A stretch of DNA of 33,660 bases from Basidiobolus meristosporus CBS 931.73. Its lineage: Eukaryota > Fungi > Basidiobolomycota. A model generated the notes under the pieces. That model was not told the DNA's origin. It was given only the letters and a program-made list of their open reading frames with translations, and searched no databases. Positions 820 through 31,141 of this stretch are shown here, in pieces (positions within the stretch are counted from its first letter, which is position 1; each line of letters opens with the position of its first letter). Made by a program: the position numbers and the translations under genes. The stretch lies in contig MCFE01000815.1 of the NCBI GenBank assembly GCA_002104905.1, forward strand, positions 1 to 33,660. The letters are read 5' to 3'.

Positions 820-3386
820 TTGATTACTCTATGAATAATAATTGTGATGATCCTGTTAAAAGGCCATCACAAAGTTAAAGTCATGTGTCTAAGAGATATT
901 GATCCTGTCAGTACACCATGTAAATACTGTTGAAAAATAATTGCACCCCAATTTAAAAAAAACTAGTAATTAAAGCTTCAGGTACAACTCAATTATAATT
1001 GCTTTGACCTGTACAAGTCCCTATACCCAAAACTAACATTGAGCCCAACCCCACACTCAGCAAGTAACACTATTAGAATCCACCATTCAGTAAATATTTC
1101 TATTAGAACACCCTTTTTCCATGACTTTGGCAGGAATCCTGCGGCTTTATGCCACTGTACATTCACTGGCTCCTATATGTCCTGGTCTTCAGCTGGTACT
1201 GCAAGGTCTAGTACTTCATCTGCCAGTCTTTGCAATAAATACCTGCAATATTCATGTGAAATTTCTTGAGCACTGCTCATGAAGAAGTGCTGCAACCTCT
1301 TAGTGGCCTATTAATGGCCCAAAATTCCCCCGCAGGCATTGTGATAGTCTTTTGAGTACTTGACATTGTTGCATTGTCTGTCAGTGGGATCTCTTCTCTG
1401 TCTACAATGGAGGCGGTGGTGGACAAATTGCTTTTCTTGGCAAACTCATCTACCTCACTGGAATGTAGGTCAACAGGCTGTGCTTCCAACCTATGAGAAA
1501 AAAGCTTTTGTCTTGTTGGGCATTCTTTGTGTCTATGAGGAGATTCAGCCCATTCTGGGCTGATGGCATTAACTGGTGCAAACTACAGCTTTTCTCTCAT
1601 ACTTCCCTCTCTCTGGCTTGGGTAATGTTTTTCTCTTTACCCTTACCTTTATTACTGCCAAGTTTTTCACTGCTACTTTAAATCAGTGCTTCTTGTATTG
1701 TGCTTTGTTTTCTCCTTGAAGAATGCTGTACTGAAGCATCTTTTTTTGCCTGCTTGACCATTGCCTGCACTCTCCTGGCTACCTACTATTTTTTTATTGC
1801 TTGTCTGGGACTATTGGCCCTGCTTGTAATGAGTGCCTGAGAAAGCTGCAGGTTTTATCAATGCCAGGTTCTTTGCTGCTATTGTGACTGAGTGTTTCTT
1901 GTGATAAATTACATTTTCTCCTTGATAGATGCTACACTGATTCATCTGTTTCTGTCTGCCTGTCCCTTACTGGCACTCCTCAAGCTATCTGATGTTTTTT
2001 TACTACTTGTTTAGAGCTTTCAGCCAAAGCTTGTGACAAGCTCTTGAGGAAGCTGCTGGTTTTTAGCAGTGGCACCTTTGTTTTCTGCTATTCTTGAGAT
2101 ACCTTCTGAGCATACAAATGCTGGCCCAAAATCTGTTTGCTTGCTTGAATCTAGGATATAGCTCATGGAACAAGTCAGGTGCATTCTGCTTAGCCATCAG
2201 TCCCTGATGTTCCCATGGCATGCTGGCCTTAAGATTATGCTATGCTAGACTTCTAACAGCCTTTGAATATTGGCCCACACCTCATCATTGCACTTAATGG
2301 CTTCACAGATCTTCAATGTCTTTTGATTTTTAGGCATGGGAATAAGCACCACAGACTCTCACTCCCATTCTATGATAGGCTTTTCTGTTGGCTCTATCTC
2401 TGGGCACTAATGTTGTGCTTCAAAGATTGAATGGTGTTCCTATGCTGTTACATTAGGAAATGGCCCAATTCATGGCTGTAATATCAAGCTACTTGGGTTC
2501 CTTCTAGGCAGCAAAGATGCCGTGTTCCCTACCTGAGATACTGATTGCTCTATATGTATTATTTGCTCATCCTGTTTCTGGAACATTTGATGACTTCTCT
2601 GGGCCATAACATGTATCCTATCAGGTACTGCACATAACTACCTCATCAATGCTTTGGTATGAGCTGACAACATACTTGCAATATGGGTGGTGGTAATGTT
2701 ATGTTGGCCATTTGCTGGTCTTCAACAGAGGGTACTGCATTTACTCCATTCTCATGTGCCTGAGCATTATGGTCAACTTGCAGTTCTGCAGAGGTTCTAA
2801 TCTGCCTACTTGGCTGAGAGCCCAAGGAGTCTGCATTGTTACCTTTGGTGGGCACACTGTCAACATGGCCTTTTTTGGATGCAGCCCTGCTTGTTGCACT
2901 GAATGTCAAAGCAAGCTGTTGTCCAGCTACTCTTCAGCTGCTGTCAACAGTGGGGTTTAATTGGGAACCAGACAACTTTGCTTTACTTTTTCTTAGTATA
3001 TATAGGGAAGTGAGTCATACCAAAGTGGAAATAGAAAAACATATATGTGTGTATGTGGTCCCACAACTTAATTCATAATGCATACTATGGCAGGCCATCA
3101 TTGAATTTCACATTCACATATGTGCAATGTTTCAAATACAAGACTCTCTTAAATTCACACAAGTATCAACAGAAAAATGCTATAATAGCATAACATTGTT
3201 GAGTGTCAAGCTGTTTGCCCCATGGAGAAGACTACTTTGATTCAATGCCATTGGAAAAGAGAAAAAAGACCATGTGGCTATTGTAACAAGCCTCTCAGCC
3301 ATGAAGCATGCAGGCAGCAAAGCAAGTATTACAAGGCTCATGGATAGTGTTTTGTCACACAAGTAATATTTTGACCATTCATCAGT
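820..3386. mobile_element. Two-gene CACTA-like element, copy 1 (partner ORF remnant on -, transposase N-terminus on + from ATG 3222), cut off by a foldback element
   Basis: Colinear homology with 17549-20530 and, inverted, with 11600-13433 and 4117-5080. 3222 reads MEKTTLIQCHWKREKRPCGYCNKPLSHEACRQQSKYY, the same segment that leads into the Tnp2 domain in the other copies. Confidence 0.7.
2931..3222. promoter_or_regulatory. Putative bidirectional promoter between partner ORF and transposase
   Basis: About 290 bp separate the two divergent starts in three copies once MITEs are removed. TATA-like TATATA near 3000 and TATAAT near 3181 recur in the other copies. Inference only. Confidence 0.3.
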
Positions 3387-4116
3387 AGACTTGCTTGGTT
3401 GGATAGTGCCACATTGAGCCATGAGTGTCAAATAGTGCCATAATGTGCCAGAGAGGCATAGCATACCTAAACTTGGCAACAGAGTGTAAAGCATAGCTCC
3501 TCATCTTCATGCAAAGCGGCCCATGTATTTCACCCCCATGCTGGAGAAATTCCATTTTTTGACCGTTTTTTTGGATCAATGTTGTGCAGGATGTGTAAGA
3601 GCTCAGAAGGACTGAAGACAAGCATCTGGTACTCAATACCCATGGCACTCTGAATCTAGCTCCTGTGGCTTGTATCAGGTCACAAACATGAATGGCACTA
3701 TCTTGGTCCACTGGTACTATCTGGCACTAAAAGTGCTTTGTATAGGTTTTACTTTAGGGCTACTATTTAATATAGTGCCAGATAGTACCAGTGGACCAAG
3801 ATAGTGCCATTCATGTTTGTGACCTGATACAAGCCACAGGAGCTAGATTCAGAGTGCCATGGGTATTGAGTACCAGATGCTTGTCTTCAGTCCTTCTGTG
3901 CTCTTACACATTCTGCACAACAATGATCCAAAAAAAATGGTCAAAAAATGAATTGTTGCCAGCACAATGGGTGAGCACAGGGGCTGCTTTGTACAAAGAT
4001 GAAGAGCTATATTTCACACTCTGTGGCCAATTTTAGGTCTGCTATGCCTCTCTGGTGCACTATGGCATCATTTGGCACCCATGGCTCAATGTGTCACTAT
4101 TCAACAGAACAGGTCT
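3387..4116. mobile_element. Foldback (long inverted-repeat) non-autonomous DNA transposon, Pangu/PHIS-like, copy 1
   Basis: Ends AGACTTG...CAGGTCT, arms of about 340 bp around a ~50-bp spacer. Flanks are AGT left and ATT right (both A-N-T but not identical). Confidence 0.85.
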
Positions 4117-5080
4117 ATTGCACCTACATGAATGTTAGATTCAATGATGACCTGCCATAGTGAGCATTATAAATAAAGTTGTGGCACCACAAACATCTGT
4201 ATATGTAACACCAATTTCACCTTTGGTTTGACTCACTTCCATATATATGCAGCCAAAAAATAAAGCAAAGTTGCATGGTTCCCAACCACACACCACCACT
4301 GACAGCAGCAGAAGAATGGTCAGACAACAGCTTGCTTTGACATACTGTGCAGCAAGTGGAGCTACAACTAAAAAAGGCTCAGTGGACAGTGTGTCCACTA
4401 AAGGTAATAATGTGCACTTCTAAGGCTCTCAGTCAAGTTGGCTATTGGGAATCTCTGCAGAGCCACAAGCTGACCAAGTTGCTGTGGCAGATAAGAATGT
4501 AGCAAGAGCACTACCTCCAGCCAGAGACCAGCAAGTGGCCATCATAACATCACCACCACCAGTATTAGCAAGTATGTTGTCAGCTTATACCAAAGCATTA
4601 ATGAGGCAATTAGGTGCAGTGGCTGCTAGGATAAATACAATGGCCCAGAGTGATCAGGAAATAGTCCAGAAACAGGATGAGCAGACAAAAGATGCAGAGA
4701 GATCAATATCCTGTATTGAGTAAGCACTATCTATACTGCAAAGAAGGAACTTTAGTAGCTCATATCACATCCAAGAATTGAGCCATTTCCCAATGTAACA
4801 GCAGGGGAACACTGTACAGCCTTTGAAGCACAACAACAGTGCTCAAGGATAAAGCCCACAGAAAAACCTATTACCACATAGGAGCAGCAGAATGTAGAGT
4901 TTATACCAAAGCCTAAGAATCAAAAGACATTGGAGATCCATGAAGCCATTGAGTGCAATGATGAGAGTGGGCTAACATTCAAAAGGCTGTTAGAAGTTTA
5001 GAACACCTACACCTTGAGACCAGTATACTGTTGGACCATTGGGAACTCAAGGTCAAGCAGAATGCACCTGACTTGCTCCA
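4117..5080. mobile_element. Two-gene CACTA-like element, copy 2 (inverted; 5' part of partner ORF on +, ATG 4316)
   Basis: Reverse-complement homolog of about 2170-3130 and 19110-20070. Confidence 0.75.
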
Positions 5081-5567
5081 TGACACAATCTCATGACATC
5101 CTTGACCTTGCATGATTTGACCAAATCTAGTTGGTGAAGAGATTGCAGTTCCTTCTAGAAAGTTCTACTGCATTCTAGCAACTACTGGAAAGCTCCAAGT
5201 CAACATTACACAATGGAACATTCTATGGAAGCTTCCCTTTGGAAATTATGTAGCTCACTACCATATATGGTAGTTGCATGTTGCATAACCTAGTTGCATG
5301 ATTAGCTGACTCATGTCATATCCCCATGTAATGTTCTAATCTGTTCTTTAGTATATTTCTATCTTGACACACTTACTGTGCCTTGCCCCAAAACCCATCA
5401 TTATTAGCCAATATCTCATGGCATCTATATTGCCAAAAAGTATATATAGATATATCCCCCCTTATGTGTTCCTCAGTCTGATAATCACAGGTCTTGAATA
5501 AACAGCCTTGCCTTGTTGATCCACACCTAAGTCCTTTCCTGGTCCTGCCTTGTGTCATTTCATAACA
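5081..5567 (+). repeat. 5' LTR of Ty3/gypsy element B (start approximate)
   Basis: Ends TCATAACA at 5567. TATA-like tract near 5441, AATAAA at 5497, followed by a leader and gag. Left boundary is set by loss of homology to the CACTA-like copy. Confidence 0.55.
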
Positions 5568-6263: not shown

Positions 6264-8959
6264 CTAAACAATAGCCAATATTAGTCTGATGGACTTAAAC
6301 TTGGCTACCGGTGCAAAGGTCTCAGTATAGTCAGGTCCTTTTGTTTGAGAGTATCCTTTGGCTACAAGTCTTGCTTTGTATCTTTCAATTTTATCATCAG
6401 CCTTGTATTTTGTCTTGAAGACCCATCTGCATCCAATTGATTTTTGGTTGAATAGTAATTTGACTAAGTCCCAAATTTGATTTTCCATCAGGGCCTGATA
6501 TTCCTTGGTCATTGCAGATCTCCAAAGCTTTGTCTGAGGGCTATTTAGGGCCTCTTTTACAGTCTGGGGCTCATCAATATGGACTGAATAGGCATAGGCT
6601 AAGTTTGTACCCTCATTGATACAGTAATTTGCGCTATTTCTTGTCCAATTGGATATCTGGGCATATGATACTGAAATGATCACTTCTGCAATATTCCTGG
6701 GCACTGATTCTGGCTGAACCACAGCTGTAGAGTCCTCTGGACTGAAAAGAATTTCATTGTTTTGCACTGATTCAATCCTGACAATTGGTGGACTTGAGAT
6801 CAAATTTTTGTCATCATCTGATGTCATTTTTTGTAAAAATTTTGAATTTTCATCAAACAACACATCCCTGGACTTGATTAGCTTCTTTGCTTTGGTATAG
6901 TAGAGTCTGTATGCCTTACTTGCATTGCAGTAGCCCAAAAATATGCATTTTACACTTTTTGGCTCAAATTTTGACTGATTTCCGGCCAGTTTTTTGGCAT
7001 ATGTTGTACACCCAAACATTCTTAGATGTTCTGCACTTGATCTGTATCCTTACCATGCTTCAAATGGAGTATAATCACAAAATATTCTGTTATTACTCCT
7101 ATTTTTAAGATACACAGCAGTGGCAACTGATTCTGCCCAAAAATCATAGGATAATTTTTGATCATGGATAACAGAACTTGCCATATCAATTATTGATCTG
7201 TTAACACGTTCTGCTACTCCATTTTGCTGTGGGGATTATGGTACAGTATTCTCTTGCTTTATCTCATGAATTTTGCAGAAGTGGATAAAGAGTTCTGAGG
7301 TATATTCTCCACCATTGTCAGATTGTATTTTCTTGATTTTTTCACCAGTTTCTCTCTCCACCATGGCTTTAAGCTCCCTGAGCTTAGCCAGAGCTTCTTC
7401 CTTTCTCTCCATGAAGTAGACCCATGTGTATTTTGTATAATCATCAATAAAAGTGATTAAATACTTCATCCTGCCTAGGGATAAATTTTACATAGGTCCA
7501 CAGATCTGAGTGAATTAGATCTAACTTTTTCTTAGTTTTGATTAACCCAGAGCTCTTGGATGGTTGTCTGGCTTGTTTCCCATATGTGCAGGCTTCACAG
7601 TGCTCCAAATTAGCTGGGGGATCAGTTTTCACTCCAGAAATTAGCTGATCTTTGATCATTTTGCGCAAAAAATTGAAATTGATGTGCCCAAATCTCTTGT
7701 GCTAAAGCATTGGTGTTTCTTCATTTAAGTTACTTATATTGGCTTCCAAATAGGATGGAATATAAGTCAGCTTGTATAGGTTCAGATCTCTGATACCCAA
7801 AGCAATATGGGCACCATTTTGATCAGTGATCTTGCATCCTGAATTGTCAAAGCTGAAACTGAGTCCATCTGCAGTGACCTTGCTTACAGATGGTAGGTTC
7901 TTGGCTTTTTCTGGTAAATAGAGTACTTCTTTAAAGGTCAGTGTATGGCTTTCTTCACTGCTTCTTAGGTTTACTTGGATAGTTCCTTCTCCCACTGCAT
8001 CAAGTGTTCTATTGTCACCCATGAAAACCTTCTTAATTGGAATTTCTTGATATTGGGTAAAAAGTTCTTTTTGGTGTGTAAAGTGTTGAGATGCTCCAGA
8101 GTCAATATACCACTTCTGAGAATCCTTATTTGTGGTCATGTTTAGTGCATATATGAATAGTATATCTTCAGTTGTTGGAGCATTTCCATATTCAGGCTTC
8201 TTTTGCTGATTATCTTTCTTTTTGAGACACTGGTCTGATGTGTGTCCTTTCCTTTTGCAGTAGTTAAAAAACAGGTTGCTGTTACCTTTGTAGGGTCTTG
8301 GGTACCTCCTTTGTTGGTTATCATTGCTTATTAAGGCATTTTCTTCTTCCTTCTTATTGGCGCTTGATTTTCTTAATTCTTCATGCAGGAGCCTTCCATA
8401 TATGTAATTTAAGGTCAAATCTTCAGTTCTGGACTCTAAGGCTGATACAAGGCCCTGAAACATGTCTGTCAGGCTAGTCAGGATGGTAACTATCACATCC
8501 TCATCAGTAGTTGGTACGCCCACAGATTCCATCTCATCTACCAGCATGGTTATTCTGTTAATTAGATTTTTCATTTCTTCTCCTGGCGGCATCTTTGTAG
8601 TAAAGAGTTTTTGTCTCATATACATTTTCTTAGCAGCTGAACATGACTGGTAGGTGTCTTCTAGTGCCTTCCAGGCATTCTTTGCCGTCTTTGCTCTTGA
8701 GCATTGAATTAGCAATTTGTCTTTAATATAGAGGCAAATGCAGTTAAAGGCACTTTGTTCTTTCTTCTGGTACTTTAAGGCTTCCTCTCTCATGTTTTTA
8801 GGAGGGCATTCTTCTCCCATGACAATATCCCAAAGTCTCTTTCTTGTAGCAGCATCTTCATCTCACCTTCCACACTTGGTAGTTAGCTCCTTCCAACTTT
8901 TCAGCGGAGAGAAAAAATCCTGTAATAGCAGTAGTAGACATTGAAGAGAGTGATAGCTT

Positions 8960-8972: not shown

Positions 8973-9320
8973 AGTTGTAAGAGTCTTGGTGATATTGGAA
9001 GTGATTGGGAGGACAAGTAGATTATGTGGTTTTCACTTAATGATTTACTGAATGTTAAAGTAGTATTTATACTTTTACCTGGTCTTGGCATAACAAACAT
9101 GTAAAATAGGTTAAGAAAGGTCCCAAGAACATGTGTGCAAAGTTTAGGGCTGTGTGACAACTTTGAGAATTTTCATGTTCTGGGTACCTGTTATTTTGGT
9201 GAAAATATTCCAAGTAAATCCCAACAAGGAATTTTGGTCAGTTTTCTCTAGGATTTGAAGGTGATGATCTAAGTGACTAAGTTAGGTGAGTATTTAGGTG
9301 GAAATATAAATTTTACATCA
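8973..9320 (-). repeat. 5' LTR of copia A (348 bp)
   Basis: Starts TGATGTAA and ends TTACAACT on -, each one base off the TGTTGTAA/TTACAACA ends of the solo copy at 13440-13789. Confidence 0.9.
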
Positions 9321-10364: not shown

Positions 10365-11767
10365 AATGTGGTCATCAGTATGAGGATACTGCTGAAAAGC
10401 AAATGAACTGCTCCCAGTGGAAAGCTTTTGCTTCAATATATATCCTCTATCTTAAGTATCTCTGGCTTCTGATTGATTCCATATTTGGGCCAATGGCATA
10501 TTGCTTGCTAACTTTGCTGAATTGCATGCTGACTTGTGTACATTTTCTCTGCGGAAAGATAATATTCCCAGTGTTGGTGTTTGGGTAATAATAATACATG
10601 TGAGTAATGGAGTAAGTCCCCATGGATCTCACACATTTGACAGCAGTACTATCCATTGTGCCCAGAAAAGCCAGCTATCTTGCTGATGGCTGGGGTATTT
10701 GCAAGACAGATAATAATATGCACTTCTATATGACAGCCATAAACAATTATCCTGCTGGAAAGCATACAAAGCACATCCAGCAATGGACATAGGTAGCTAT
10801 CCAGGTGGACAGTGATTTAGGCCCAGATACCAGTGAGACTACCATTAGATTTCTGCTCTGATACCACAAGCTAGGTGGTAGATCCAGGTTGATGAGAATC
10901 AGTGGTCAGCAGAATTTGCCAGTAGAGTACTTGTTTAAGGGGAATCCATGAAGTGCCAAGGCAAAGGCATGGCCATACATACCCTCAAGGTAGCCCATGC
11001 TAGTTAGCTGTTTGTAATGTTTGTTATTGAGTATATTGGATATGTTTGAGCTTAATTGATACTGAGTGCAGTACTTTATAGCTTCACAATACTTGTTGGA
11101 CTGCATGAGCTTCTTTAGACAGGGCATTACCCAAATACATACAGAGTGTGAACAACATTTACCCCCAATGGTGGTGGATTCCTGACAAGTTGGACACCTT
11201 GCAATGGTGGCATTTTCTGATGTGAATTCCATGCAAATGTTAATACATGCTGGTATCTGGATAGTCTCTGGGTCATATGTTGCCTGCCACATGATGGTTG
11301 TCCACCTATAACTTGTGCATGGTAAGTTGCATCCTGGGATGATTTTTGCAAGAAGTAGTAGTAAATCCTCAAAGCCCCCACTACTGATATTAGTGGAAAC
11401 ACACCACTTCTCTAGCCACAACATCACATCAGTCATCAGTAAGTGATTACTGGGCTCACTTGACTCCACAAAGTATCCTTGGCATTTTTTTCAACAGGTG
11501 TTGTCTCATTGCCTATAGGGATTTGACTGGGCTCATACATGGTACTGTTGTTAGGGGAGATAGGCTTCATCAAGTGGCCAACAAGATATTGTAGGTACAG
11601 TAGTGACTGGTGAATGGTCAAATATGACTTGTGTGGCAAAACACTTGCCATGATCCCTGTATTACTTCCTACGCTGTCTGCATGCTTTATGGCTAAGTGA
11701 CCTGCTACAATGGCCACATGATCTTTTTTGCTTTTCTTACAGTGTTGATCAAAGTAGTCTTGTCCAT
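10365..11767 (-). pseudogene. CACTA/EnSpm Tnp2 (Transposase_21-like) transposase remnant
   Basis: ORF 10906-11469 has NLPCTSY...ACINICMEFT...RCPTC...FALALHGFPL. Downstream frames give AGFSGHNGxYCCQMC and YGINQKPEILKIEDIYxSKSFPLGAVHLLF, all typical Tnp2 blocks. Confidence 0.85.
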
Positions 11768-11779
11768 GGAGAAGATATT

Positions 11780-11989
11780 AGACTTGTTCCATCATTCCAG
11801 CTGATCATAGTGCCCAATAGTGCCATAGCATGCCAGATGGTGCCTGATCATGCCACAGAGTGCCAGAGGGTGCCATACATTGCCAATTTGTGATCAAAAT
11901 TGAGATGCATATGTCCCTAAATGTCAAATTAATAACAAAATATACAGCACTTTCTGGCACTATGATCAATGGTACAATGGAACAAGTCT
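11780..11989. mobile_element. 210-bp MITE of the AGACTTG family (Pangu/PHIS-like)
   Basis: TIR AGACTTGTTCCA...TGGAACAAGTCT with a perfect ATT duplication (11777-11779, 11990-11992). Removing it restores the length of the empty site in copy 1. Confidence 0.9.
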
Positions 11990-13439
11990 ATTCTGACATT
12001 CAACAATGTAACGCTATTATATCACTTTTTGCCATCACCCATGTGAGTTTAAGACAGTCTTGAGTTTGTGACATAGCACCTACATCAATGTAAGACTCTA
12101 TAATGACCTGCCATAGTAAGTATCATAGATAAAGTTGTGTCATCACATGCACATGCATATGAAATACCATTTCCCCTTTGGTTTGACTCACTTCTATATA
12201 TATGCATCCTAAAATAAAGCAAAGTTACATTGTTCCCAACCAAACCCCACAGCTGACAGCAGCAGAAGAATGGTTAGACAACAGCTTGCTTTGACATTCA
12301 GTGCAATAAGCCATGCTACAGCCAAAAAAGGCCCTGTGGACAGTGTGCCCACTAAAGGTAATAGTGCAGACTCCTCAGGCTCTCAGTCAAGTAGGCAATT
12401 GGGAGCTTCTGTGGAGCCACAAGCTGGCCATATTATGGAGGCAGACTAGAATTTAGCAAAAGCAATACCCTCAGTTGATGACAAGCAAGCAGCTTACATA
12501 ATATCATTACCACCTGTATTTGCAGGTATCTTGTCAGCTCATACCAGAGCATTAATGAGGCAATTGAATGCAGTGGCTAATAGGATTGAAGTGATGGCCT
12601 TGAGAAGTCAGGAAATAGACCAGAGACAGGATGAGCAGATAAATGGTGTAGAGTAATCAATATCCCAGGTAGAGAATGCAGTATCTTTGCTGCAAAGAAG
12701 GAACTAAAGTAGCTCCATGTCACAGCCAAGAATTGAGCAATTTCCCAATGTAATGGCCAAGGAACACTGTACAATCTTTGAGGTAAAACAACAGTCCCCA
12801 AAGATAAAGCCCACAGAAAAACCTATCATAGCATGGGAGGGTAAAAATGTAGTGCTTATACTAAAGCCTTAAAATCAAAAGATATTGAAGATCCATGAAG
12901 CTGTTGAGTGCAATGATAAAGATTGGGCTAATATTGAAGAGGCCATTGGATGTCTAGCATGGCAACACCTCAAGGCCAGCATACCATGGGATCATCATGA
13001 ACCCAAGGCCTAGTAGAATGCCCTTAACTTGCTCCACAAGCATTATCCTGGATTCAAACAAGCAAATGGATTTTGGGCCAACAATGGTACACTAAGAAGG
13101 TATCTCAAGTATAGCAGAAGCTATCAGCAGTAGAAGAACAAGGGTGCAATTACTAAAAGTCCGCAGCTTCCTTAAGAGGCCATTACAAGGAGGGCCAAAA
13201 GCTCCAAACAAGCATTAAAGACACATCAGGTAGCTGGAAGAGTGACAATAAGGGAAAAGCAGGCAGACACATATGCACCAGATTAACATTTACCAAGGAG
13301 AAAGTGTGGTTTTACTCAAGAAGCACTCAGTCAAATTAGCAGTGCAGGACCTGGCAGTGCTAAAAACAAGTAGCTACCTCAGAAGCCCATCATAGCATGG
13401 TCTGAGAATTGGAAATAAGCAGAAAAGAAGCGTTGTGGT

Positions 13440-13789
13440 TGTTGTAAAAAATTCGTAATTCCACCTAAATATTCACCTAACTTAGTCACTTAGATCATCA
13501 CCTTCAAATCCTAGAGAATACTGACCAAATTCCTTGTTGGGATTTACTTAGAATATTTTCACCAAAATACCAGGTACCCAGAACATGTAAATTCTCAAAG
13601 TTGTCCAAACAGCCCCAAACTTTGCACACATGTTCTTGGGACCTTCCTTAACCTATTCTACGTGTTTGTAATGCCAAGACCAGGTAAAAGTATAAATACT
13701 ACTTTTACATTCAACAAATCATTAAGTGAAAACCACATAATCTACTTGTTCTCCCAATCACTTCCAATATCTCCAAGACTCTTACAACA
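13440..13789 (+). repeat. Solo LTR of copia family A (350 bp)
   Basis: TGTTGTAA...TTACAACA ends, perfect 5-bp TSD GTGGT, closely similar to 8973-9320. Confidence 0.95.
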
Positions 13790-16443: not shown

Positions 16444-17548
16444 TATTGTAAGAGTCTTAGAGATATTGAAAGTGATTGGGTGAATAGGTAGAATGTAGAG
16501 TCTTTACTCAATGATTTACTGAATGTCAAAGTAGTATTTAGACTTTTAACTGTCTTGGCATAACAGACATGTAGAATATGCACAGGAAGATCCCAAAAGC
16601 ATGTGTGCAATACTAAGGGCTGTGTGGACAACTTTGGCAATTTTTGTGGTCTGGGTACCTTATGTTTTGGTGAGAATATTCTAAGTAAATCCCAACAAGG
16701 AGTCTGGTCAGTATCTTCTAGGATCTGCAGGTAATGATCTAGGCTACCAAGTAGGTGATTATCTAGGTGAAATTATAAATGATTGTAGCACTCCCACTCC
16801 ACTAAATGCTCTTACAGACCAGTCCCAATTTTCACCTGAGATATCAAAAATTATCTCTAGGTAATGGCTTTGTAAATAATTCTGCAATCGTTTCATCTGT
16901 AGGATAGTAAGCCAAGCTAGCTAAGTTACTCTCTTTAGCTTCCCATTGGAAATGCTGTGTAGCATCTATGTTCCTGGTTCTAGCATGAAAAATTGTATCT
17001 CTATCTAATTATATATACATCCTTGATAATCTTGAAATAAAGTGGTATATATTTTTTGACATAAGCTTAAATCTTTCAAGCAGCTTCCTGAGCCACATTG
17101 CTTCATTTATAGCTTCACAGGCTGCTATATATTCAGTCTCCGTGGTAAAAAGAGTACTGGTTTGTTGCTTTCTTGAATTCCATGAAATAGCTCCTTTACA
17201 GTGTGGAAAAGTGTATCCTGTGCTGGATCTTTTGCCTTCAGCATTGTATTCCACAAGATCTTTCTGAGAGTCCCTTTAAGTGTACCTTAAACAGATATCA
17301 GCAGCTTCTATTAGGCTTCTGAATGTCTGCCCAACTGCTGCAATTTGATGAGTGCCATAGTTCTGACTATGTTGGCTGCCAACTCCCACTGACTATGAGA
17401 TAACTGGACATGCTCCAAGCATGATATAAATCCGACTGCTACAATAGATTGATAAGCAAAGTCAGGGCTTTTAGATGGCACCCTGTTCTCTTGATTTGAT
17501 TGAGAGTTGACCAAGTCAAGGTTTGTCACCTTTGGGGTTGCTGCTAGT
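16444..17548 (-). mobile_element. pol: 3' end of a copia family-A relative (end of RT, RNase H, PPT, 3' LTR 16444-16790)
   Basis: RSSTGYTF...AISWNSRKQQT...TETEYIAACEAINEAMWLRKLL (RNase H). Purine tract AGTGGAGTGGGAG at 16791-16803 precedes an LTR homologous to, but visibly more diverged than, the other two family-A LTRs. Confidence 0.9.
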
Positions 17549-17599
17549 TTACTCTACAAGAAATTTTTGTAATGATCCCATAAAAAAGTCATCACAAAG

Positions 17600-19878
17600 T
17601 TAAAGTCCTGTGACTTAGTGGTTCTGATCCTGTCAGGACAGTGTCCAGAGACCATTGAAATGTAATTGCGCCCCAGATTTCACAAGAAACTTAGTCAAAA
17701 TTTTTCATCACAACAATATGTAAGTGGCTTTTGATTGGTTCCCTGCCAATTTGCTCACTTTCTGATCCCAGACACTCTATCACCTCCTGCATTTGTGTGA
17801 ATTGATTGGTTACTGCATTATTTTCACACTCCTCACTTCCGGAATCAACTGTTTCTCTTACTTTTCATACATACAAATTGATTTATTTCCAATGAAACTT
17901 CTGTTGTACCTCAATTGCCAATTGTATTGACCTATACAAGTCTCTATACCCTGCATAAACATAAAGTCCAACCTCAAACTCAACAATTAACTCCACTAAA
18001 GTCTCCCACTTAATAAGTATTTCTGCTCTAACACCCTGGTTCCACAACTTTGGCAGGAACCCAACAGCTTTGTGCCACTGTTCAGTCACTGGTTCCCACA
18101 TGTCCTGGTTTTCTGCTGGCACTGCAAGGTCTAGCTGCTCTTCTGCCAGTCTTTGCAATAAGTTCTTGCAATATTCCAGTGCATTTTCTTGAGCACTGCT
18201 ATTGAAGAAGTGCTGCAACCTCTTGGTGTGCCTATTAATGTTTCAAAATTCCACTGAAGGCATTGTGATAGTATTTTGAGCTCTTAACATTATAGCCATG
18301 TCTGTCAGTGGGATCTCCACTCTGTCAACAATGGAGGATGTGGAGGCTCTGGTAGGCAAATTGCCATTTTCTGCAATTACATCTATCTTGCTGGAGTGTA
18401 GCTCAACTGGCTGCACTTCCAATGCTTGTGAAAACAGTTGTTTTCTTGTTGGTAATTCTTCTAGGCTATGATGAGATTCAATCTGTCCCGGGCTTGCGGC
18501 ATTAATTGGCAAGAACTGCAGTTTTTTTTGCATGCCTCCTTGTCTCAGGCTTGGGTAGACATTTTTCCCTCTACCTTTTCCTTTATCACAGCCAGGTCTG
18601 TCACTACTACCTTTCTAAGTGCTTCTTGTAAAGAACTAAGTTTTCTCCTTGATAAGTTCTACTCTGACACTTCTATTTTGGCCTGCTTGTCCCTTGCTAG
18701 CACTCTTCTGGCAACCTGACATTTCTTTTCCACTTGTTTTGAGCTCTCAACTGTAGTTGTGATGGGCTTCTGCAAAAGCTGCTGGCTTTCATCACTGCCA
18801 GGTCCTTCACTGCTACTTTACTAAGTGCTTCTTGAAATGGTAATATGCTTTTTCCTTGATATATGTTGCACTGGTGAATCTGTGTCTGCCTGCTTATCCC
18901 TAATTGGCACTCTTCCAGCTACCTGACATATCTTTGACACTTGTCTGGAGCTTTTGGCCCTGCTTGTAACAGGCTCTTGAGGAAGCCACTAGTTCTTAGC
19001 CATGGTACCCTTGTTCTTCTGCCCTTGATAGTTTCTGCCATTCTTAAGATGCTTTCTTAGCATACCAATGCTGGCCCAAAATCTGTTTGCCCATTTGAAT
19101 CCAGGATATTGCTCATGGAACAGGTTGAGTGCATTCTGCTTGGCCTTGAGTTCCTGATGGTCCCATGGTATGCAGGCCTCAAGGTGATGGCATGCTAGAC
19201 TTCTAATGGCTTCTCAAATATTAGCCCACTCTTCATTATTGCACTCAATGTTTTGACAGACCTTCAATGTCATTTAACTTTTAGGCTTCAATGTAAACAC
19301 CACATTGTTCTTCCCACACTGTGATAGGTTTTTCTGTGGGCTTTATCTTTGAGGACTGTTGTTGTACTTCAAAGACTGTACAGGGTTCCTCTGCTGTTAC
19401 ATAAAGAAATAGCTCAATTCTTGGCTGTACATTCAGCTACTTGAGTTCCTTCTTGGCAGCAAAGATACTGCTTTCTCTGCCTGGGATATTGATTGCTCTA
19501 CACGGATTATCAGCTCATCCTGTGTCTGGGCTATTTTCTTGCTTCTTGGGCCATTGCATCTATCCTATCAGTCACTGCACCTAATTGCTTCATTATTACT
19601 TTGGTATGAGCTGACAACATGCTTGCTAATATGGGTGGTGGCAATGTTGCAATAGCCACTTGCTGGTCATCAACTGAGGGCACTGCGTTGGCTACATTCT
19701 CATCTACCTGAGCATAATGGACAGTTTATGGCTCTGCCAAGGTCCTCAATGGCCTACTTGACTGAGAGCCTGAGGAGTCTGCATTATTACCTTCAATGGG
19801 CACACTGCCCACAGGGCCTTTTTTGGATGCAGCCCTGCTTGTTGCACTGAATGTCAAAGCAAGCTGTTGTCCAACCAT
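17600..19878 (-). pseudogene. Decayed partner ORF of the CACTA-like element, function unknown
   Basis: Conceptual reading through stops: MVGQQLALTFSA...PPPILASMLSAHTKVIMKQLGAVTDRIDAM...IECNNEEWANIREAIRSLACHHLEACIPWDHQELKAKQNALNLFHEQYPGFKWANRFWASIGMLRKHLKNGRNY..., then a ~206-bp duplicated basic segment and a Cys-containing part. The ATG is present in 3 of 4 copies. The 3' end is uncertain. Confidence 0.6.
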
Positions 19879-20139
19879 ACTTCTGTTGCCATCAGCACAG
19901 GTGTTTGGTTGGAAACCAGAAGACTTTGCTTTGTTTTTTGGTGGCATAAAATGGAAGTGAGTCAAACCAAAGGAGAAATAGTGTTACATATGTGTGTGTA
20001 TGTGGTGCCACAACCTTATTTGCAATGCTTACTATGGCAGATCATCATTGAATCTTACATTCATGTAGGGGCAATGTCTCAAATACAATACTGTCTTAAG
20101 TTCACATGAGTATTGACCAAAAAGTGATATAATAGCGAT

Positions 20140-20350
20140 AGACTTGTTTCATTATTCCAGCTGATCATAGTGCCCAGTAGTGCCATAGCATGCCAGATGG
20201 TGCTTGATCATGCCACAGAGTGCCAGATGGTGCCATACAGTGCCAATTTGGGATCAAAATTGACATGCATATGAGCCTAAAATATCAAAATAATAACAAA
20301 ATATGCAGCACTTTCTGGCACTATGATCAATGGCACAAATGAACAAGTCT
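20140..20350. mobile_element. 211-bp MITE of the AGACTTG family, second copy
   Basis: Highly similar to 11780-11989. Flanks GAT/ATT, and a 3-bp duplication fits the empty-site length. Confidence 0.9.
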
Positions 20351-20382
20351 ATTATGTTGCTGAAGGTTAAACTGTTTGCCCC

Positions 20383-21663
20383 ATGGACAAGACTACTTTG
20401 ACTCAATGCTGTAAGAGAACAGAGAAGAGACCATGTGGCTATTGTAGCAAGCCGCTCATCCATTGAGCCTGCAGACAGCATAGCAAGTATTACAAGGATC
20501 AAAGCCAGTGTTGTGCTACACAAGTCATATTTGACCATTATCTTGCAGGCTAGTTGATACTTCTATATCAGCACCTGGCCATCTTTGTCACCTTGCACAA
20601 ACTGAGCCAGGTGAGTTTTTGATGCCTTTAGGCTCACCTCAGCCTTCTGAACATGGCATGCAGAGTGATAGTGCTGAGAAAGAAGGTTCACTGATAGATT
20701 TTGAGCCTATCTCCACTAATAACAGCACCATGTATGAGCCTGGTCAAATCCCTATATGAAACAAGACAACACCCATTGAAACAAATGCCAAGGATAATTT
20801 ATGGAGCCAAGTGAGCCCAGTAATTCATCTACTGGTGAATCATGTAAAGTTGTGGCTAATGAAGTGGTGCATAACTGCTAGTTTCAGTAATGGGGGCTTT
20901 AAGGATTTATTACTGCCTCTTTACTAATTCATTCCAGGATGCAACTAATCATGTGGATGGTGTAAGTGGATAACAGTCATGTGGCTGGCAACATATGACC
21001 CAGAGACCGTCCTGATTCCTGCATAAGTTATGAGTTTCATGGCATTCATATCCAAAAATGCTACTATTGCAATGTGTCCAAATTGTCAGGAATGCACTAT
21101 CTATAAGGGAAGACATTGTTCACAATCTGGTTATATTCCAGTATTAACCCATCCAAAGAAGCATATATAGTCCCACAAATATTGCTATGCTATAAAGTAC
21201 TGCATTCAGTATTAATCAAGCGCAAAAATATCTTTTATATTCAATGGTAAACATTACAAAAAGCTAATAATCAAGGGCCACATTGAAGGTATATATGACC
21301 ATGCCTTTGCCATAGCACTTAATGGATTCTCATTAAACAAGTACTCTACCAGCAAATCCTGCAGGCCACTAATTCCCATCAACCTAAATCTGCTACCTAT
21401 CTTACAGTATCAGAGCATAAATCTGATGGTAGTCTTGCTGGTATTAGGGACAATATCACTGTCCAACCTGGATTACTACATGTATCCTTTGCCGGATGAA
21501 TATCTTATGCTTTCCAGCGGGATAACTGTAAATAGCCATCAAGTAAAAGCACACATTATTATCTGTAGTGTAGAGACCCCAGCTTTCAGCAAGAGAGCAG
21601 GTTTTTCTGGGCACAATGGGCAGTTGTGCTGTTGAATGTATGAGATCCAGGGGATTTACTCCA
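20383..21663 (+). pseudogene. CACTA/EnSpm Tnp2-type transposase remnant, copy 4
   Basis: MDKTTLTQCCKRTEKRPCGYCSKPL... through ...VKAHIIICSVETPAFSKRAGFSGHNGQLCC*MYEIQG, colinear with 10600-11767 (-). Confidence 0.85.
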
Positions 21664-22390
21664 TGTGTATACAAAATCCCATTTGGTAAATTGGTATGGT
21701 AGCATTATACAAAGATAGTTGTAGGGCACCATACTGCTGTGAAAATGCCATCATTGACTTACAATGAGGCCATCAAGATAGCATTAACTTTCTGCCATAT
21801 AAGGGAGTTGGATGTACTGGCCGGCTAGTTCCATTTGAAATAGTTGCAGAGTGCATTGAGATTGCAACAATACCACACAATTATTGTCACAGCACCAATC
21901 AAATCCAGTCATGTATTGTAACTTTATTTAGCAGTAAAATTAGCAAAATGCCATCATGATCTGGTTATAAGATGGTCAAGGGAGTCACTGATTCAAAGCT
22001 GCTTGTATTTGATGGTCTCCAAACAGGAACCTGATGGCTGATCTGGATTGGATCCCCCACATGACAAAATTATTTTCCATAGGGGTAGTAGTTATATGGT
22101 GATATGCCAATCTTTTCCAATGATGATCTGCTGCATTTGCAAATAAACTTCAAAGTCTTTTTCCAAGTCTACCTCCCTGTCTGATAAGATTTGCCTGGGG
22201 CATTCAAACTTCATTTTAAGCTCATGGTAAAGGAGACTGGCAAATTCTTGTTTACTGGCTACTAGCACAACCCTAGCCACTGGCAATATGGTGGCTAGGT
22301 CAACTGCTACTAAAATCCACCCATTGCATTTTCCAGTAGTTGGAGTCTTCCAATAAAGTTCAATGCACATCTCTCAAGTGGTCTTACTAA

Positions 22391-23964: not shown

Positions 23965-24365
23965 ACCCACTTCAAGGTGTTGCCTTTCTTGAAAAATTAT
24001 TCAAAAGGGTTGTAATATTTGCAAAGTACTTGACAAATCTCCAACAACAGGAAACTATTCCAAGAAGTGATATGTGCTCTGAAATGCTATGGGGCTGCCT
24101 CAGATTCTTGATAACTTCCACTCTCTTTAGATGTAAGTTCACTCCTGTGCTATTCATTATGTGTCCCCATTACTCAACTGGTTTTTTGAAGAGCTCACAC
24201 TTTGTTAGCTTGCTATGTAGCTTGTTCTCTCTGAGCTTCTTCAGGACCTTTTCAATGTGCACCAGTGGTTCTGTGCTCTCTTGCAGTATACCAATATGTC
24301 ATCTAGGTAGATTACCCCATACTTGTCTAAGTTATGCCAGAAGATAGTTAACTTCAAGGTTCAAT

Positions 24366-25099
24366 AGACTTGTTCCGTTGGATAGTGCCACATTGAGCCA
24401 TCAGTGCCAAATGATGCCATAGTGTGCCAGGGAGGCTAAGTGAGCCTATACTTGGCCACAGTGTGTGAAACATAGATCTGCATCTTCATGCAAAGCAGCC
24501 CCTGTGTTTTACCAATTGTGTTGGAGAAAATCCATTTTTTGACCTTTTTTTTTAGGTCAATGTTGTGCAAGATGTGTAAGAGCACAAAAGGATTGAAGAT
24601 ATGCATTTGGTACTCAATACCCATGGCACTCTGAATCTAGCTCCTGTGGCTTGTAACATGTCACAACAATGCATGGCACTATCTTGGTCCACTGGTACTA
24701 TCTGGCACTATAAGTGCTTTGTATAGATCTTACTTTGGGGCTAATAATTAAATATTGTGCCAGATAGTACCAGTGGACCAAGATAGTGCCATGCATTGTT
24801 GTGACATGTTACAAGCCACAGGAGCTAGATTCAGAGTGCCATGGGTATTGATTACCAAATGCATATCTTCAATCCTTTTGTGCTCTTACACATCTTGCAC
24901 AACATTGACCTAAAAAAAAAGGTCAAAAAATGGATTTTCTCCAACACAATTGGTAAAACACAGGGGCTGCTTTGCATGAAGATGCAGATCTATGTTTCAC
25001 ACACTGTGGCCAAGTATAGGCTCACTTGGCCTCTCTGGCACACTATGGCATCATTTGGCACTCATGGCTCAATGTGGCACTATCCAACGGAACAAGTCT
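24366..25099. mobile_element. Intact 734-bp foldback element (Pangu/PHIS-like), copy 2
   Basis: Arms 24366-24708 and 24757-25099 (343 bp each, about 4-5 differences by eye), 48-bp spacer, perfect AAT duplication. Removing it restores the RT frame NAPATx*TL...IF...YLDD. Confidence 0.95.
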
Positions 25100-26120
25100 A
25101 ATATGTTGCAGGGGCATTGGTGAAGCCAACACTCATGACTATGAACTTGTAATATTAATTTCTGGTACAGAATGCTGGCTTAGGGATGTTGTCCAGTTTC
25201 ACCCCTATATGGTTGCATCCTGACATGAGGACAATCTTGCAAAATGTGATGGCCCCATTGAGTTGGTCCAAAAGCTTACCAGTCAACAATACACAATACT
25301 TATTCTTCATTGCAACAGACTTAAGGGCTCTGTTGTCAGTGGACATCCTAAGTGTTCCATCTACTTTTTTCATAAAGAGCACTGGTGCACCCAAGGTGAC
25401 TTGCTGGTCCTAATGTATCCTTCCCCCTATGGTGGATCATATTTTCTCTTCTTTGCTTCATTCCAACGGAGTCATCATGTAAGGTGTCTTGCGCACTGTG
25501 GGGCTGGCTCCTGTGTCAATGGCATGATCCATGGCTCTGACTGTTGAAATTGAGGTTGAACTGGTAAGTTCCAAGTAGAGTCTAGTTTTCAAGAGAAATT
25601 GTTCTAACATGTATTGAGTGATGCTTGTGAGTCAATTACATTCTTGGCAGGAACTCCAATGTCTACTCCATTCAGATATAATATTTGCCCTTGGCTTGAG
25701 GTTATTGGGGATAAGTATTCTTCTGTCATATGGAAGGTGAGTATAAGTCTTCTTCAATCTCCTCCAACAGGGTACTATGCTCAAAAGCTTCAATATGGGT
25801 GAAGGTTTCTGTGGACTGGTGTCCATTTCTTTTCTGAGGGCAGTACTTTGAGATATGTCCTTGCTAGTACTCTTGACAGGGCTTTGCTGGCTCTGGCCCA
25901 TAGTATTCATTCCTTGTTGCTGCTGGCTGAGGATCTGGAGTAACTGTTGCTGTTTGGCCAGGATTTGATGCATAGAGTTCTTTCATTCTTCATTTTCTAC
26001 CATCTTGAGGGAGGCTGCCTCCTGCTTCTGGAGGCAAGTTTCTAGTATTGCTGCTACTAATGTTGCAAGACTTAGCATAAGAGCTTTAGATGAAATAGGC
26101 AGTTTAGCTAGTATGGTACT

Positions 26121-26613
26121 AGACTTGTTCTGTTTGATAGTGCCACATTGGGCCGTGGGTGCCAAATAGTGCCATCGCATGCCAGGAAGGCATAGCAGAC
26201 CTGAACTTGGCCACAGAGCGTGAAATATGACTCTTCATCTTTATGCAAAGCAGCCCCTGTGCTTCACCCATTGTGCCAGAGAAAATCCATTTTTTGATCT
26301 TTTTTTTTGGGATCAACATAGTTCAGGATGTGTGAGAGCACAGAAGGACTGAAGAAATGCATCTGATACTCAATACCCATCTTCAATCTTTTTATGCTCT
26401 TACACATCCTGCACAAGATTGATTTATATAAATAGGTCAAAATAGGGATTTTCTCCAGCTCAATGGGTGAAACACAGGGGCCACATTACATGCAGATATA
26501 GAGCTATGTTTCACATTCTGTGGTCAAATATTGGCTCAATTGGCCTCATTAGTACACTATGGCATTATTTGGCATTCATGGCTCTATGTGGCACTATCCA
26601 ACAGAACAAGTCT
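26121..26613. mobile_element. Foldback element copy 3 with central deletion (493 bp)
   Basis: Both termini present. The left arm stops at AATACCC (26380) and joins the right arm at ATCTTCAAT. Flanks ACT/ATT. Confidence 0.85.
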
Positions 26614-28419
26614 ATTCACTACAACTGCACTAACTATTGCTGAGGCTCCAGCAGCACCTTGTATTCATTCCCCAGATCATAACACTAAGACTGAGCAAAA
26701 CAATGGACCCAGTTGATCAAGATGAATACTTTTTAATAGGTTGAGCAAGAGTGTTAAAGTATCAGAGAGCAATGTTGGAAGTGAAATGCAAAGTTGGAGT
26801 ATTAACATCATATTCACTGGTTGGTTCATTGAGATGCAACATGGTAATTGAACTCATTACAAAGCTACCTAAATGTAACTGTTTGGAAGAAGAATCCTAG
26901 CTTGGAAGAATGCAAGAAGAAAGTACTTTGCTTCAATTGCCTCCAGTATGAGCATATCTCAAAGATCTACCCTTACAGAAGAAGTGGATATTGGTCAACA
27001 AGAACTTTCAGTCATACTGTAGTCTGAGAACATAGCAGAGTTTAGGATGAACTTGAGGACAACTCAGAATACCCTTCAATACTACAGAAGAATACTTTTC
27101 CCAAAAGATCTCAAACCCAAGGAATTTATTATGCCTGAATAGAGTAATTGTGGGGGTTCCTGCCAAGAGCATTATTGACTTAGGAGCATCACTCAAGCTC
27201 ATGACAAACAATTGGCCTTCAAAGATGGAATGCACTCAGAACCTACCAGTTCATCTTCAATTTAAGCAGCATATGGGAGCTCTTAGCAAGATCAACCATT
27301 TTAATTAGCCAGTAAGAATGTAGATAAATGTTTATGAAGAAGACCTACAGGCCTCAATATCTGAAAGCTGCAAATCTGATGTGGTGCTTGGAAAAACATG
27401 GCAATTCAACTGTAGTCCATCAATCACATAGACACAATACCACTCAGACCCAAAAAGGCAACCAGATTTGTGAGTTACTACCTACCACTCTTAACCTCTA
27501 CTTTGTTAATTCTGGTGTTTTAGAAACAAGTGAGCGCAGCAAAACATGGTTCTTTATATCACTTAGAGAAACATCACTGGCATACATAGTACAAATCAGA
27601 TTGGCCCAGCTTGCCACCAATGTACTTGGAGGACAAAGCCATTCCTAATGAGATCAAGAAGATTATCAGGAATGAAGCTATCAAATGGGCAGTAAAGGAA
27701 AAAACACTCTGCCAAATTGTTGATGGAAACCTTATTGCCTATGACCACTATGTTCCTTGCCTATATTTAATCCATAAGCTACTTAATCAATATATACATC
27801 TAGCAGCTGATGAAGTCTATAGCCTGGCAAAAGCTGGAGCATGGTGATCCAGAAAGAAGCAGGAAAATGGGAAGCAAGTGAAAGCATGCTCAAGTTAGCA
27901 TAATTAGCCAAGCTTACCTACACTGAATTACTGAACTCTGCCCCTTGAAGCCAGACAGATCAGCTGAGAGATGTGTAATTGACTTTATTGTAAGACTGCT
28001 CACTGTCAGAAGAAGCAATTTGTGGATTTTATTAGCAATTGACCAAGCCACCATATTGCCTGTGCCTATAGGTTTTCTAGTGGCAGGTAAACAAAAAGTT
28101 CCAAGTCTCATATACCATAAGATCCTGATGAAGCTTGGATGCTCTGGGAAAATGTTGTTTGATAAAGGGGCAACTCTATGGCAAATGCATTTGATGCCTA
28201 CATGGAGACACAGCAGATCAAACATTAGAAAACTTTGGCATATTACCACAGAACCAATTGAGTAACTGAGCGGCTTAATAGATTGTTTGGAAAAGTGCTG
28301 ACCAAGTAGGCCAACAGAGCTATAAGTATATGGGACAACCATACTGATCAGGTACAGTTTTATTGAAGAGTTAGAGTGCACAATACCACCCTAGAATTGC
28401 CACTTTACTTAGGTGAGAC

Positions 28420-29535: not shown

Positions 29536-30422
29536 TATAGTGGCCAATAACCTAGAAACACTGGAAGAGACTAAATTCAGTCTATCTAAGGAGTTAAAGA
29601 TGTCCAATCTAAGAGAACTTAATCACTACTGAGGGATTAAGTTCTCCATAGACAGAAGTACCCAGACTATCACCCTAAGCTAATCCAAGTGTATTCAAGA
29701 TGTACTAAAGAAGTACCTGTTGGAAGACTTTAAACTAGCAGCTACCCAAATAGAGACAAACCTTGACCTGGTCAGACTCAACCAAATTAACAGAGCTTGG
29801 TTCCATATGCAAGCCCTAACTTTCCTTATCAATCTGTGGTTGGCACTGTGAGGTACATCATGCTTGTAACACATCCATATATCTTTTATTCAGTGGAAGT
29901 TGTCAGCCAACATAATCAGAACTATGGATCTGATCATATTGCAGCAGTTAAGCAGATTTTTATATATATAAAAGGAGGTGCTGATATCTGCTTAGATAAG
30001 TCCATATGGATTTGGAACAGAATCTTGTGGGATACTCTGATGCTGATTAGGGACAAAATATAGCTGATAAAAGATCCACCACAGGATACACCTTTCTTTA
30101 CTGTAAAGAAGCAATCTTATGGATTCAAGAAAGCAATCAAATGAAGCACTTCCCACCACAAAGGCAGAGTATCTGGCAGCCTGTGAAGTTGCAAAAAAAG
30201 CAATGTGGTTAAGAAAGCTATTTACAGGCTTAGGCCTGTGTCAAAAATCTCTATTACTTTATTTCATGGTAATCAAGGATATATACAATTAGGTAGGACT
30301 CTAGCTCTTCATGCTAGAACTAAGCACATAGATATTAGATATTATTTCAAATGTGAAGCAATAGAGAATATCTTGATTAGCTTAGCTTACAGTCCTTCAG
30401 ATGAAATAATCATGGACATATT
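29536..30422 (+). pseudogene. pol: Ty1/copia RT-RNase H fragment (family-A-like)
   Basis: IVANNLETLEETKFSLSKELKMSNLREL...PYQSVVGTVRYIML...RSTTGY...LHARTKHIDIRYYF. Homologous to 16860-17548 (-). Confidence 0.9.
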
Positions 30423-30736
30423 AGACTTGTCTGTTGGATAGTGCCACATTGAGCCATGAGTACCAAATGATGCCATAGTGTGCCAGGGAGGCAAGTGAAC
30501 CTATACTTAACCATAGAGTGTGAAAGATAGCTCTGCATCTTCATGCAAAGTAGCCCCTGTGTTTCACCCATTGTGTTTGATAAAATCCATTTTTGACCTT
30601 TTTTTTAGGTCAATGTTGTGCAGGATGCATAAGAGCACAGAAGGATTGAATATATACATCTGGTACTCAATACCCATGGCACTCTGAATCTTGCTCCTGT
30701 GGCTTGTAACATGTCAGAAAAATGCATGGCACTTTC
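30423..30736. mobile_element. Left arm of a foldback element, interrupted by copia C
   Basis: ATT then AGACTTGTCTGTTGGATAGTGCC..., colinear with 24366-24682 up to GCATGGCACTTTC. Confidence 0.9.
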
Positions 30737-31105
30737 TGTTGAAATATTGGACTATTTGGTATCATTCAGCAGCTAAAAATTTACTTAACAATTCTAGGCT
30801 AGTCTTAGTCACTGTAGGACTCATTTACTGCCTTAACTTTGCCACTTTCTCCAGATATATGATCTTATGATTATTCCCCTATAGTCAGGATCAAATCAGC
30901 ACTATTACCAAACATTATGTACTAACCCTGAAACTGTTACAGAGTGCTCCTGAATATTGAGAAACCCTCCCTACTTAGTGTTGCAGCTGTATTACTTCTA
31001 CAAAGGTATAAATACTGAGCATCTTTATGAATAAACAACAGTTCAACTATTATCACTATTTCTTGATAAGTTCCTTATATCCAAATCACTTCTTAGATTG
31101 CAACA
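30737..31105 (+). repeat. 5' LTR of copia C (369 bp)
   Basis: TGTTGAAA...TTGCAACA, followed directly by the PBS. Confidence 0.95.
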
Positions 31106-31118: not shown

Positions 31119-31141
31119 GATTGCCTTAATCTATTCTAAAG

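Follow-up and report, generated by a model that had tools for sequence, protein, structure and literature searches.

Organisation of the element copies

The window, i.e., the whole stretch of DNA analysed here, comprises 33,660 nucleotides of contig MCFE01000815.1 from Basidiobolus meristosporus CBS 931.73 and contains the remains of a DNA transposon in which a Tnp2-type transposase gene (Pfam family Transposase_21) lies head-to-head with a second long gene, referred to below as the partner. Self-comparison of the window resolved four copies, A, B, C and D, with pairwise identities of 76-80%. Both genes are linked in A, B and C, and D contains only the 5' part of the partner. Aligned with C, copy A is 76.5% identical over 2259 bp, copy B (10607-13429) 79.5% over 1442 bp and 78.5% over 962 bp, and fragment D (4117-5083) 78.7% over 968 bp, while the ratio of transitions to transversions among the copies is 1.4-2.0. 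The features of the copies are as follows:

17549..21664 (+), copy C, with the partner on the minus strand and the 5' part of the transposase on the plus strand; the left edge adjoins a copia fragment and the right edge is the end of similarity to B
17886..19947 (-), partner remnant of copy C, about 690 codons, with the ATG at 19947 and the stop just below 17886, interrupted by stop codons and a few indels of 1-2 bp
17886..18242 (-), C-terminal domain of the partner, 119 stop-free codons, with the motifs W-E-x2-N-x2-W-H-x-A-x-G-Y-P-P-x2-W, E-W-W-I-L-x-E and C-x-V-G in this order
18615..18956 (-), tandem duplication inside the partner of copy C, with a period of 207 bp, i.e., exactly 69 codons
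19948..20382 (no strand), spacer between the divergent genes of copy C, made up of 217 bp that belong to the element and an inserted miniature inverted-repeat transposable element (MITE)
20139..20356 (+), the MITE in this spacer, 218 bp, AGACTTG-ended, a later insertion outside the ancestral unit
20383..21664 (+), 5' part of the transposase of copy C, about 427 codons, with a Cys/His motif (20371-20463) and the Transposase_21 match (21216-21632), ending near the end of the Pfam domain
824..3379 (+), copy A, with the partner at about 985-2999 (-), a spacer without MITE at 3000-3221 and the transposase from 3222 (+)
10450..13429 (-), copy B, with the transposase from 11767 down to at least 10607 and its frame open to 10450 (-), the spacer at 11768-12201 with a MITE at 11779-11995, and the partner from 12202 (+) to 13429, where another repeat truncates it
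4117..5083 (+, inverted relative to C), fragment D, the 5' part of the partner with the ATG at 4247 and about 280 codons, cut 130 bp upstream of the ATG

In a three-frame reading, the transposase starts with MDKTTL or MEKTTL at 20383 (+) in C, 11767 (-) in B and 3222 (+) in A. About 15 codons after this start, a Cys/His motif is found in all three copies (RPCGYCNKPLSHEACRQQSKYY in A, RPCGYCSKPLIH*ACRQHSKYY in C and RSCGHCSRSLSHKACRQRRK*Y in B), which corresponds to no Pfam family. Further downstream, PF02992 (Transposase_21) matches copy C at 21216-21632 (+) with an E value of 2.5e-7 and 30.6 bits, as compared with a cut-off of 28.6, over profile positions 36-148 of 213, and copy B weakly at 10750-10905 (E 0.025). 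Pfam scans of the transposase pieces return only this family, and neither a KDZ transposase nor CxC domains were detected. A 194-residue piece of the transposase gave no match in a word-index protein search, the length window of which excludes full-length relatives, so that this result is not evidence of absence. Neither a further Tnp2 fragment nor a downstream half of the transposase was found elsewhere in the window. The element is a Tnp2 DNA transposon family of the CACTA/CMC type (CMC, CACTA/EnSpm-Mirage-Chapaev) with a second, divergent gene.

The partner starts with MPPKNKAK at 19947 (-) in C, 12202 (+) in B and 4247 (+) in D, and its start codon is mutated to ATA at 2999 (-) in A. The spacer between the two starts measures 222 bp in A, 435 bp in C and 434 bp in B, and 217 bp each in B and C after removal of the MITE. 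The initial annotation of this DNA had described four copies, of which three are head-to-head and a fourth keeps the 5' end of the partner, a Tnp2-type transposase with a conserved N-terminal Cys/His motif, and a unit that becomes visible only through comparison between copies, all of which is borne out here: the Transposase_21 match in C exceeds the Pfam cut-off, and the motif is present in A, B and C. The constant spacing that it reported is likewise found, although its value is about 220 bp (217-222 bp after MITE removal) instead of about 290 bp.

The 218-bp AGACTTG-ended MITEs in the spacers of C (20139-20356) and B (11779-11995) lie about 20 bp apart and point in opposite directions with respect to the element. 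Their mutual identity is 92%, as opposed to 79% for their host copies, and they are therefore later, independent insertions into the same short spacer. Longer members of the AGACTTG family, with near-perfect hairpin arms, are found at 3382-4117, 24361-25100, 26117-26616 and 30416-30737; the arms at 24365-24712 and 24753-25100 are 99% complementary, and the member at 3382-4117 lies exactly between copy A and fragment D.

The partner gene

Judged from its sequence, the partner is a real ancestral coding gene of about 710 codons, because a consensus restores its reading frame, stop codons are depleted specifically in this frame, the copies tile a single frame of 712 codons with a 69-codon repeat, and relatives exist at the protein level. 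The majority consensus of the four copies contains an open frame of 366 codons that begins just upstream of MPPKNKAK, as opposed to at most 92 codons in unrelated frames of the same consensus and at most about 100 codons in the single copies of this region. Stop codons in the partner frame number 7 in 465 codons in C, 11 in 459 in A, 12 in 408 in B and 3 in 283 in D, and 7-39 in each of the other five frames; in every copy, the partner frame has two to five times fewer stops than any other frame, a difference far larger than chance would produce. The same is seen in the C-terminal part, with 1 and 3 stops in the frame versus 4-25 in the others. The stop-free pieces of all copies together tile one frame system of 712 codons. 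The in-frame duplication of copy C recurs in A (1682-2022, period 206 bp) and is thus present in both copies that cover the region. The long ORF (open reading frame) that had been noticed as the divergent neighbour of the transposase is substantiated by the consensus frame, the frame-specific stop depletion and the protein relatives. The consensus and the X-joined tiling guide were used for the frame analysis only, and protein searches were carried out with stop-free pieces from the window.

The N-terminus of the encoded protein is basic (MPPKNKAK), and the protein also contains low-complexity stretches, a predicted helical or coiled segment and a Trp-rich helical middle region. Pfam gave no match for 17 partner pieces at E values up to 1, nor for the relatives described below, and PDB profile searches with the N-terminal helical and the Trp-rich middle regions returned nothing. 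An N-terminal piece gave no match in the word-index protein search; here too, the length window excludes full-length relatives and the result is not evidence of absence. Atlas look-ups provided no usable lead, the middle piece lying near unnamed fungal clusters at 0.89-0.90 only.

The exhaustive profile search was made with the C-terminal domain only, using a profile of the last 119 residues built from one piece of copy C and two pieces of copy A. Against 1.84 billion cluster representatives, it found five true relatives with E values of 1e-18 to 1e-5 and one spurious repeat protein, and a profile word search added two more relatives, so that about seven relatives of the partner family are present among 15 billion predicted proteins. 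One of them is KAK9753544.1, a partial hypothetical protein from Basidiobolus ranarum, and the others come from short unannotated ENA or Logan contigs. The domain is C-terminal in all of them and often follows a stretch rich in Ser, Thr, Pro and Lys, as it does in the window. Identities are 22-37%, and certain L, E, W, H, P and W positions hardly vary across the relatives. The C-terminal domain is thus deeply conserved across distant taxa. Two scans of JGI metagenomes for partner relatives with flanking sequence found none.

A first structure model, calculated from the decayed window sequence, was poor, with a predicted local distance difference test (pLDDT) score of 62.6. With a natural relative as the first row, AlphaFold predicts a five-helix bundle with confidence for the C-terminal domain (pLDDT 79.6, predicted template modelling score 0.75). 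No convincing fold match was obtained for this model, the best Foldseek hit having an E value of 2.1 and the best VIA-align hit among 48,161 chains a Z score of 5.0.

Another reading of this domain would be a divergent dynein light chain (LC8)-like module, through which the protein would dimerise or be tethered to the dynein/LC8 hub. LC8 chains were the only ones matched in the PDB by the domain profile, with E values of 0.008-0.8 (best 0.0079); the match spans helices 1-2 of LC8 and the WHCIVG strand, and the positions C, L-x-K, DI and N-x2-W-H-x2-V-G agree. However, these E values are marginal, none of 10 members of the family was matched by Pfam Dynein_light even at E values up to 10, the AlphaFold model contains helices only, including the region that corresponds to the beta sheet of LC8, and LC8 is listed by neither Foldseek nor VIA-align. 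An LC8 identity is therefore very improbable and was rejected on account of the silent Dynein_light profile, the absence of the LC8 sheet from the model and the fold searches.

Decay of the copies and surrounding repeats

The copies are old and inactivated, and they diverged by neutral decay after insertion. Each of them is broken by many stop codons and frameshifts, none is complete in the window, and no element in the window is able to transpose today. The window as a whole is a nest of decayed repeats with a CpG observed/expected ratio of 0.059, compared with 1.20 for GpC, and between 0 and 7 CpGs are left in each of the four partner copies. Copia-like and gypsy-like fragments surround the copies, and the transposase of A is cut at 3379, 158 bp into the gene, by an AGACTTG-family element. 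The similarity between B and C ends at 10607 and 21664, respectively. A common truncation point of both copies was considered and rejected, as with two copies the similarity ends at the first break, and the frame of B continues for 52 codons beyond it. Since this frame stays open, C rather than B is probably the broken copy.

Several other repeats were observed in the surroundings. A 340-bp repeat at 8974-9314 and 13448-13788, 94% identical and inverted, flanks a gypsy reverse transcriptase fragment together with copy B, and a third copy (82%) lies at 16446-16780; these repeats may be remnants of long terminal repeats or reflect an inversion. The exact 15-mer ATTTCCAATGAAACT occurs at 728-742, in the left flank of A, and at 17885-17899, in the partner stop region of C, about one such pair being expected by chance in a window of this size. 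Two copia-like elements at 31130-33658 (+) and 6264-8862 (-) have open frames of 548 and 372 codons from the ATG. As these frames are far longer than those in the CACTA copies, the two elements are probably younger. Their exact proteins are absent from the public protein collection searched.

Interpretation and alternative explanations

The window probably contains four ancient, inactivated copies of one two-gene, cut-and-paste transposon family of the CACTA/EnSpm-Mirage-Chapaev type (Tnp2, Transposase_21). In the active ancestor, two genes would have been transcribed apart from a spacer of about 220 bp, one encoding a DDE transposase that carries a CCHC-like Cys/His motif at its N-terminus and the other an accessory protein of about 710 residues with a 69-residue in-frame duplication and the predicted five-helix domain at its C-terminus. 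The two genes were amplified or duplicated together and then decayed. By analogy with other two-gene elements, the spacer is presumed to be a shared bidirectional promoter region that would keep both proteins co-expressed. The partner may have been the element's own helper, which, like TnpA/ORF2 or the second protein of PIF/Harbinger, would bind element DNA or bridge the ends and recruit or stabilise the transposase; this role is a tentative assignment, to which we give somewhat less than an even chance. A wider proposal, which we consider rather doubtful, would be that the partner represents an unnamed ancient helper family, recognisable by its C-terminal WH-x-A-x-GYPP / EWWIL five-helix domain and obligately paired through a bidirectional promoter with a distinct fungal Tnp2 clade that extends from the present genome to zoopagomycetes such as Basidiobolus, and that it would correspond to TnpA outside plants, with a fold of its own.

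Several observations weigh against this interpretation. Terminal inverted repeats of CACTA/CMC elements start with CACTA, CAC or CCC, and their target-site duplications measure 2-5 bp, typically 3 bp. The search for termini and target-site duplications suggested in the initial annotation yielded neither in the window, where no copy has both ends. A candidate end, TTACTCTACAAGAAA, forms the common left edge of C (17549) and A (824) and has no inverted mate in the window; it recalls the En/Spm end, its pattern matches are not above chance, and with two copies the edge may be a mere break. The transposase copies stop at about 430-450 codons, near the end of the Pfam domain, and the full DDE triad and the C2C/H3-4H motifs are not seen. 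No DNA-binding domain was detected in the partner by Pfam and PDB profile searches, the function proposed for it is drawn purely from analogy, and its relatives came without genomic context, the linkage to Tnp2 being seen in the copies of this window. Substitutions between copies are spread evenly over the three codon positions (94/103/107 for C versus A, and 47/47/66 in the C-terminal part), and the ratio of non-synonymous to synonymous substitutions (dN/dS) between copies is uninformative, with similar values in all frames. This even spread means that the copies diverged by neutral decay; the codon-level constraint between copies that had been proposed as a check is thus not seen, and the ancestral coding capacity is shown by the frame analysis and the relatives instead. 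Finally, the four copies could be old segmental duplicates, in which case the three linked copies would not be three independent witnesses.

In such a scenario, the copies would be ancient segmental duplications of one rearranged heterochromatic locus, and the head-to-head junction, inherited once, would say little about a functional unit. The pairwise identities are indeed all alike (76-80%), the copies are clustered within 22 kb, none of them has recognisable ends or target duplications, and A and D are inverted around one MITE-like element. However, no flanking sequence is common to the copies, they are cut at different points by different elements, and the deep homologues make the partner a gene family and not a local oddity, for which reasons we regard duplication of the locus as unlikely. 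The partner could also be a captured host gene, or a gene of another element, that was co-amplified as a passenger beside the transposase. Fungal DNA transposons do capture genes such as TET/JBP (PMC12730594), the partner shows no similarity to TnpA or other known accessory families of transposons, and its relatives are short isolated ORFs with no visible transposase. On the other hand, A, B and C have the spacer and the junction in common, the distance of about 220 bp between the partner start and that of the transposase is what a shared promoter would lead one to expect, Pfam detects no cellular domain family in the partner, and the relatives are extremely rare and lie on tiny unannotated contigs, which is typical of repeat-derived sequence and not of a conserved host gene. 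A passenger origin is accordingly judged distinctly unlikely.

Even less credible, to the point of being hardly tenable, is that the partner ORF is an artefact and that the 2.4 kb upstream of the transposase are a non-coding subterminal region kept open by its base composition. Substitutions between copies show no excess at third positions in the N-terminal 470 codons, the opposite strand is also open over some stretches of 64-111 codons, and tandem repeats are present as in subterminal regions, all of which would fit such an artefact. Against it stand the restoration of the 366-codon frame by the consensus in one frame only, the stop depletion specific to the partner frame in all four copies, the repeat period that is a multiple of three, and protein relatives at 22-37% identity with conserved Trp, His and Pro positions. 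The two-gene transposon family with its own accessory gene is the explanation that we prefer.

CACTA-type accessory proteins outside plants are essentially uncharacterised and evolve so fast that they escape annotation. The analysis provides a gene model for one such protein and a conserved domain with which further members can be sought, which aids the annotation of the repeat-rich 'dark matter' in a CpG-starved genome, and the divergent layout around the 220-bp spacer predicts co-regulation. It does not reveal a new class of mobile element.

Comparison with known systems

The initial annotation considered the two-gene CACTA layout a candidate for an undescribed system. This is not supported as it stands, since full-length CACTA elements are normally described as consisting of a transposase and an ORF2 whose function is unknown (PMC4158355), and accessory proteins that are specific to a lineage and not alignable with those of other lineages have been noted before in animal and fungal CACTA relatives (DeMarco 2006, PMC1636069). 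A second element-encoded ORF beside the transposase, which is a CACTA feature, is present here in the form of the partner of about 712 codons. As in plant CACTA elements (En/Spm), a Transposase_21 transposase is accompanied by a second element-encoded protein without enzymatic signature. In plant CACTA elements, TnpA/ORF2 attach to the subterminal DNA and assist in excision, and the second protein of En/Spm binds subterminal repeats and is required for transposition (PMC1636069; PMC4158355). Unlike in plants, where both products are encoded on the same strand (in En/Spm by one alternatively spliced unit), the genes diverge here from a 220-bp spacer, and the 17 partner pieces match neither Transposase_24 (PF03004) nor Transposase_23/TNP1 (PF03017) at E values up to 1. 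The CACTA termini and the 3-bp target duplication of the plant elements are not seen in these copies, none of which has both ends.

Multi-gene EnSpm, Plavaka and KDZ elements have been described in fungi, mainly with TET/JBP passengers (Kojima 2025, PMC12730594). The EnSpm/Plavaka elements of the CMCT clade (PMC12730594) share with the present family the fungal host, a Tnp2-like transposase, the multi-gene organisation and a methylated, CpG-poor repeat landscape. However, the described multi-gene forms carry a TET/JBP dioxygenase, and no Tet_JBP match was obtained with any partner piece. Their published termini (for example CAC..GTG; EnSpm-1_PGr CACCACGG...) do not resemble the candidate end found here, and neither GYPP nor WWIL, two motifs of the partner, occurs in the supplementary sequences of that study (PMC12730594).

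SmTRC1 and other CACTA-related elements of animals and fungi (PMC1636069) also combine Transposase_21 with extra Cys-rich regions and have lineage-specific, unalignable accessory proteins. The products of SmTRC1 arise by alternative splicing on one strand, whereas here a separate, divergent gene encodes a protein whose C-terminal domain is conserved across distant taxa.

Two separate genes, the second of which encodes a non-catalytic helper, are also characteristic of PIF/Harbinger elements, from which the functional model for the partner was taken. PIF/Harbinger elements encode a DDE transposase and a Myb-like DNA-binding protein, with the genes in either orientation. In contrast, the transposase in the window belongs to Tnp2 (PF02992) and not to DDE_Tnp_4/Plant_tran, and no Myb/SANT match was found in the partner pieces by Pfam or PDB profile searches.

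CACTA elements with two ORFs, the second encoding a fast-evolving protein, are thus already well known, and the element described here is a variant layout of a well-known transposon type. What is unusual about it is the divergent orientation of the two genes around a spacer of about 220 bp, together with a partner family that has no Pfam model and very few relatives in the databases.

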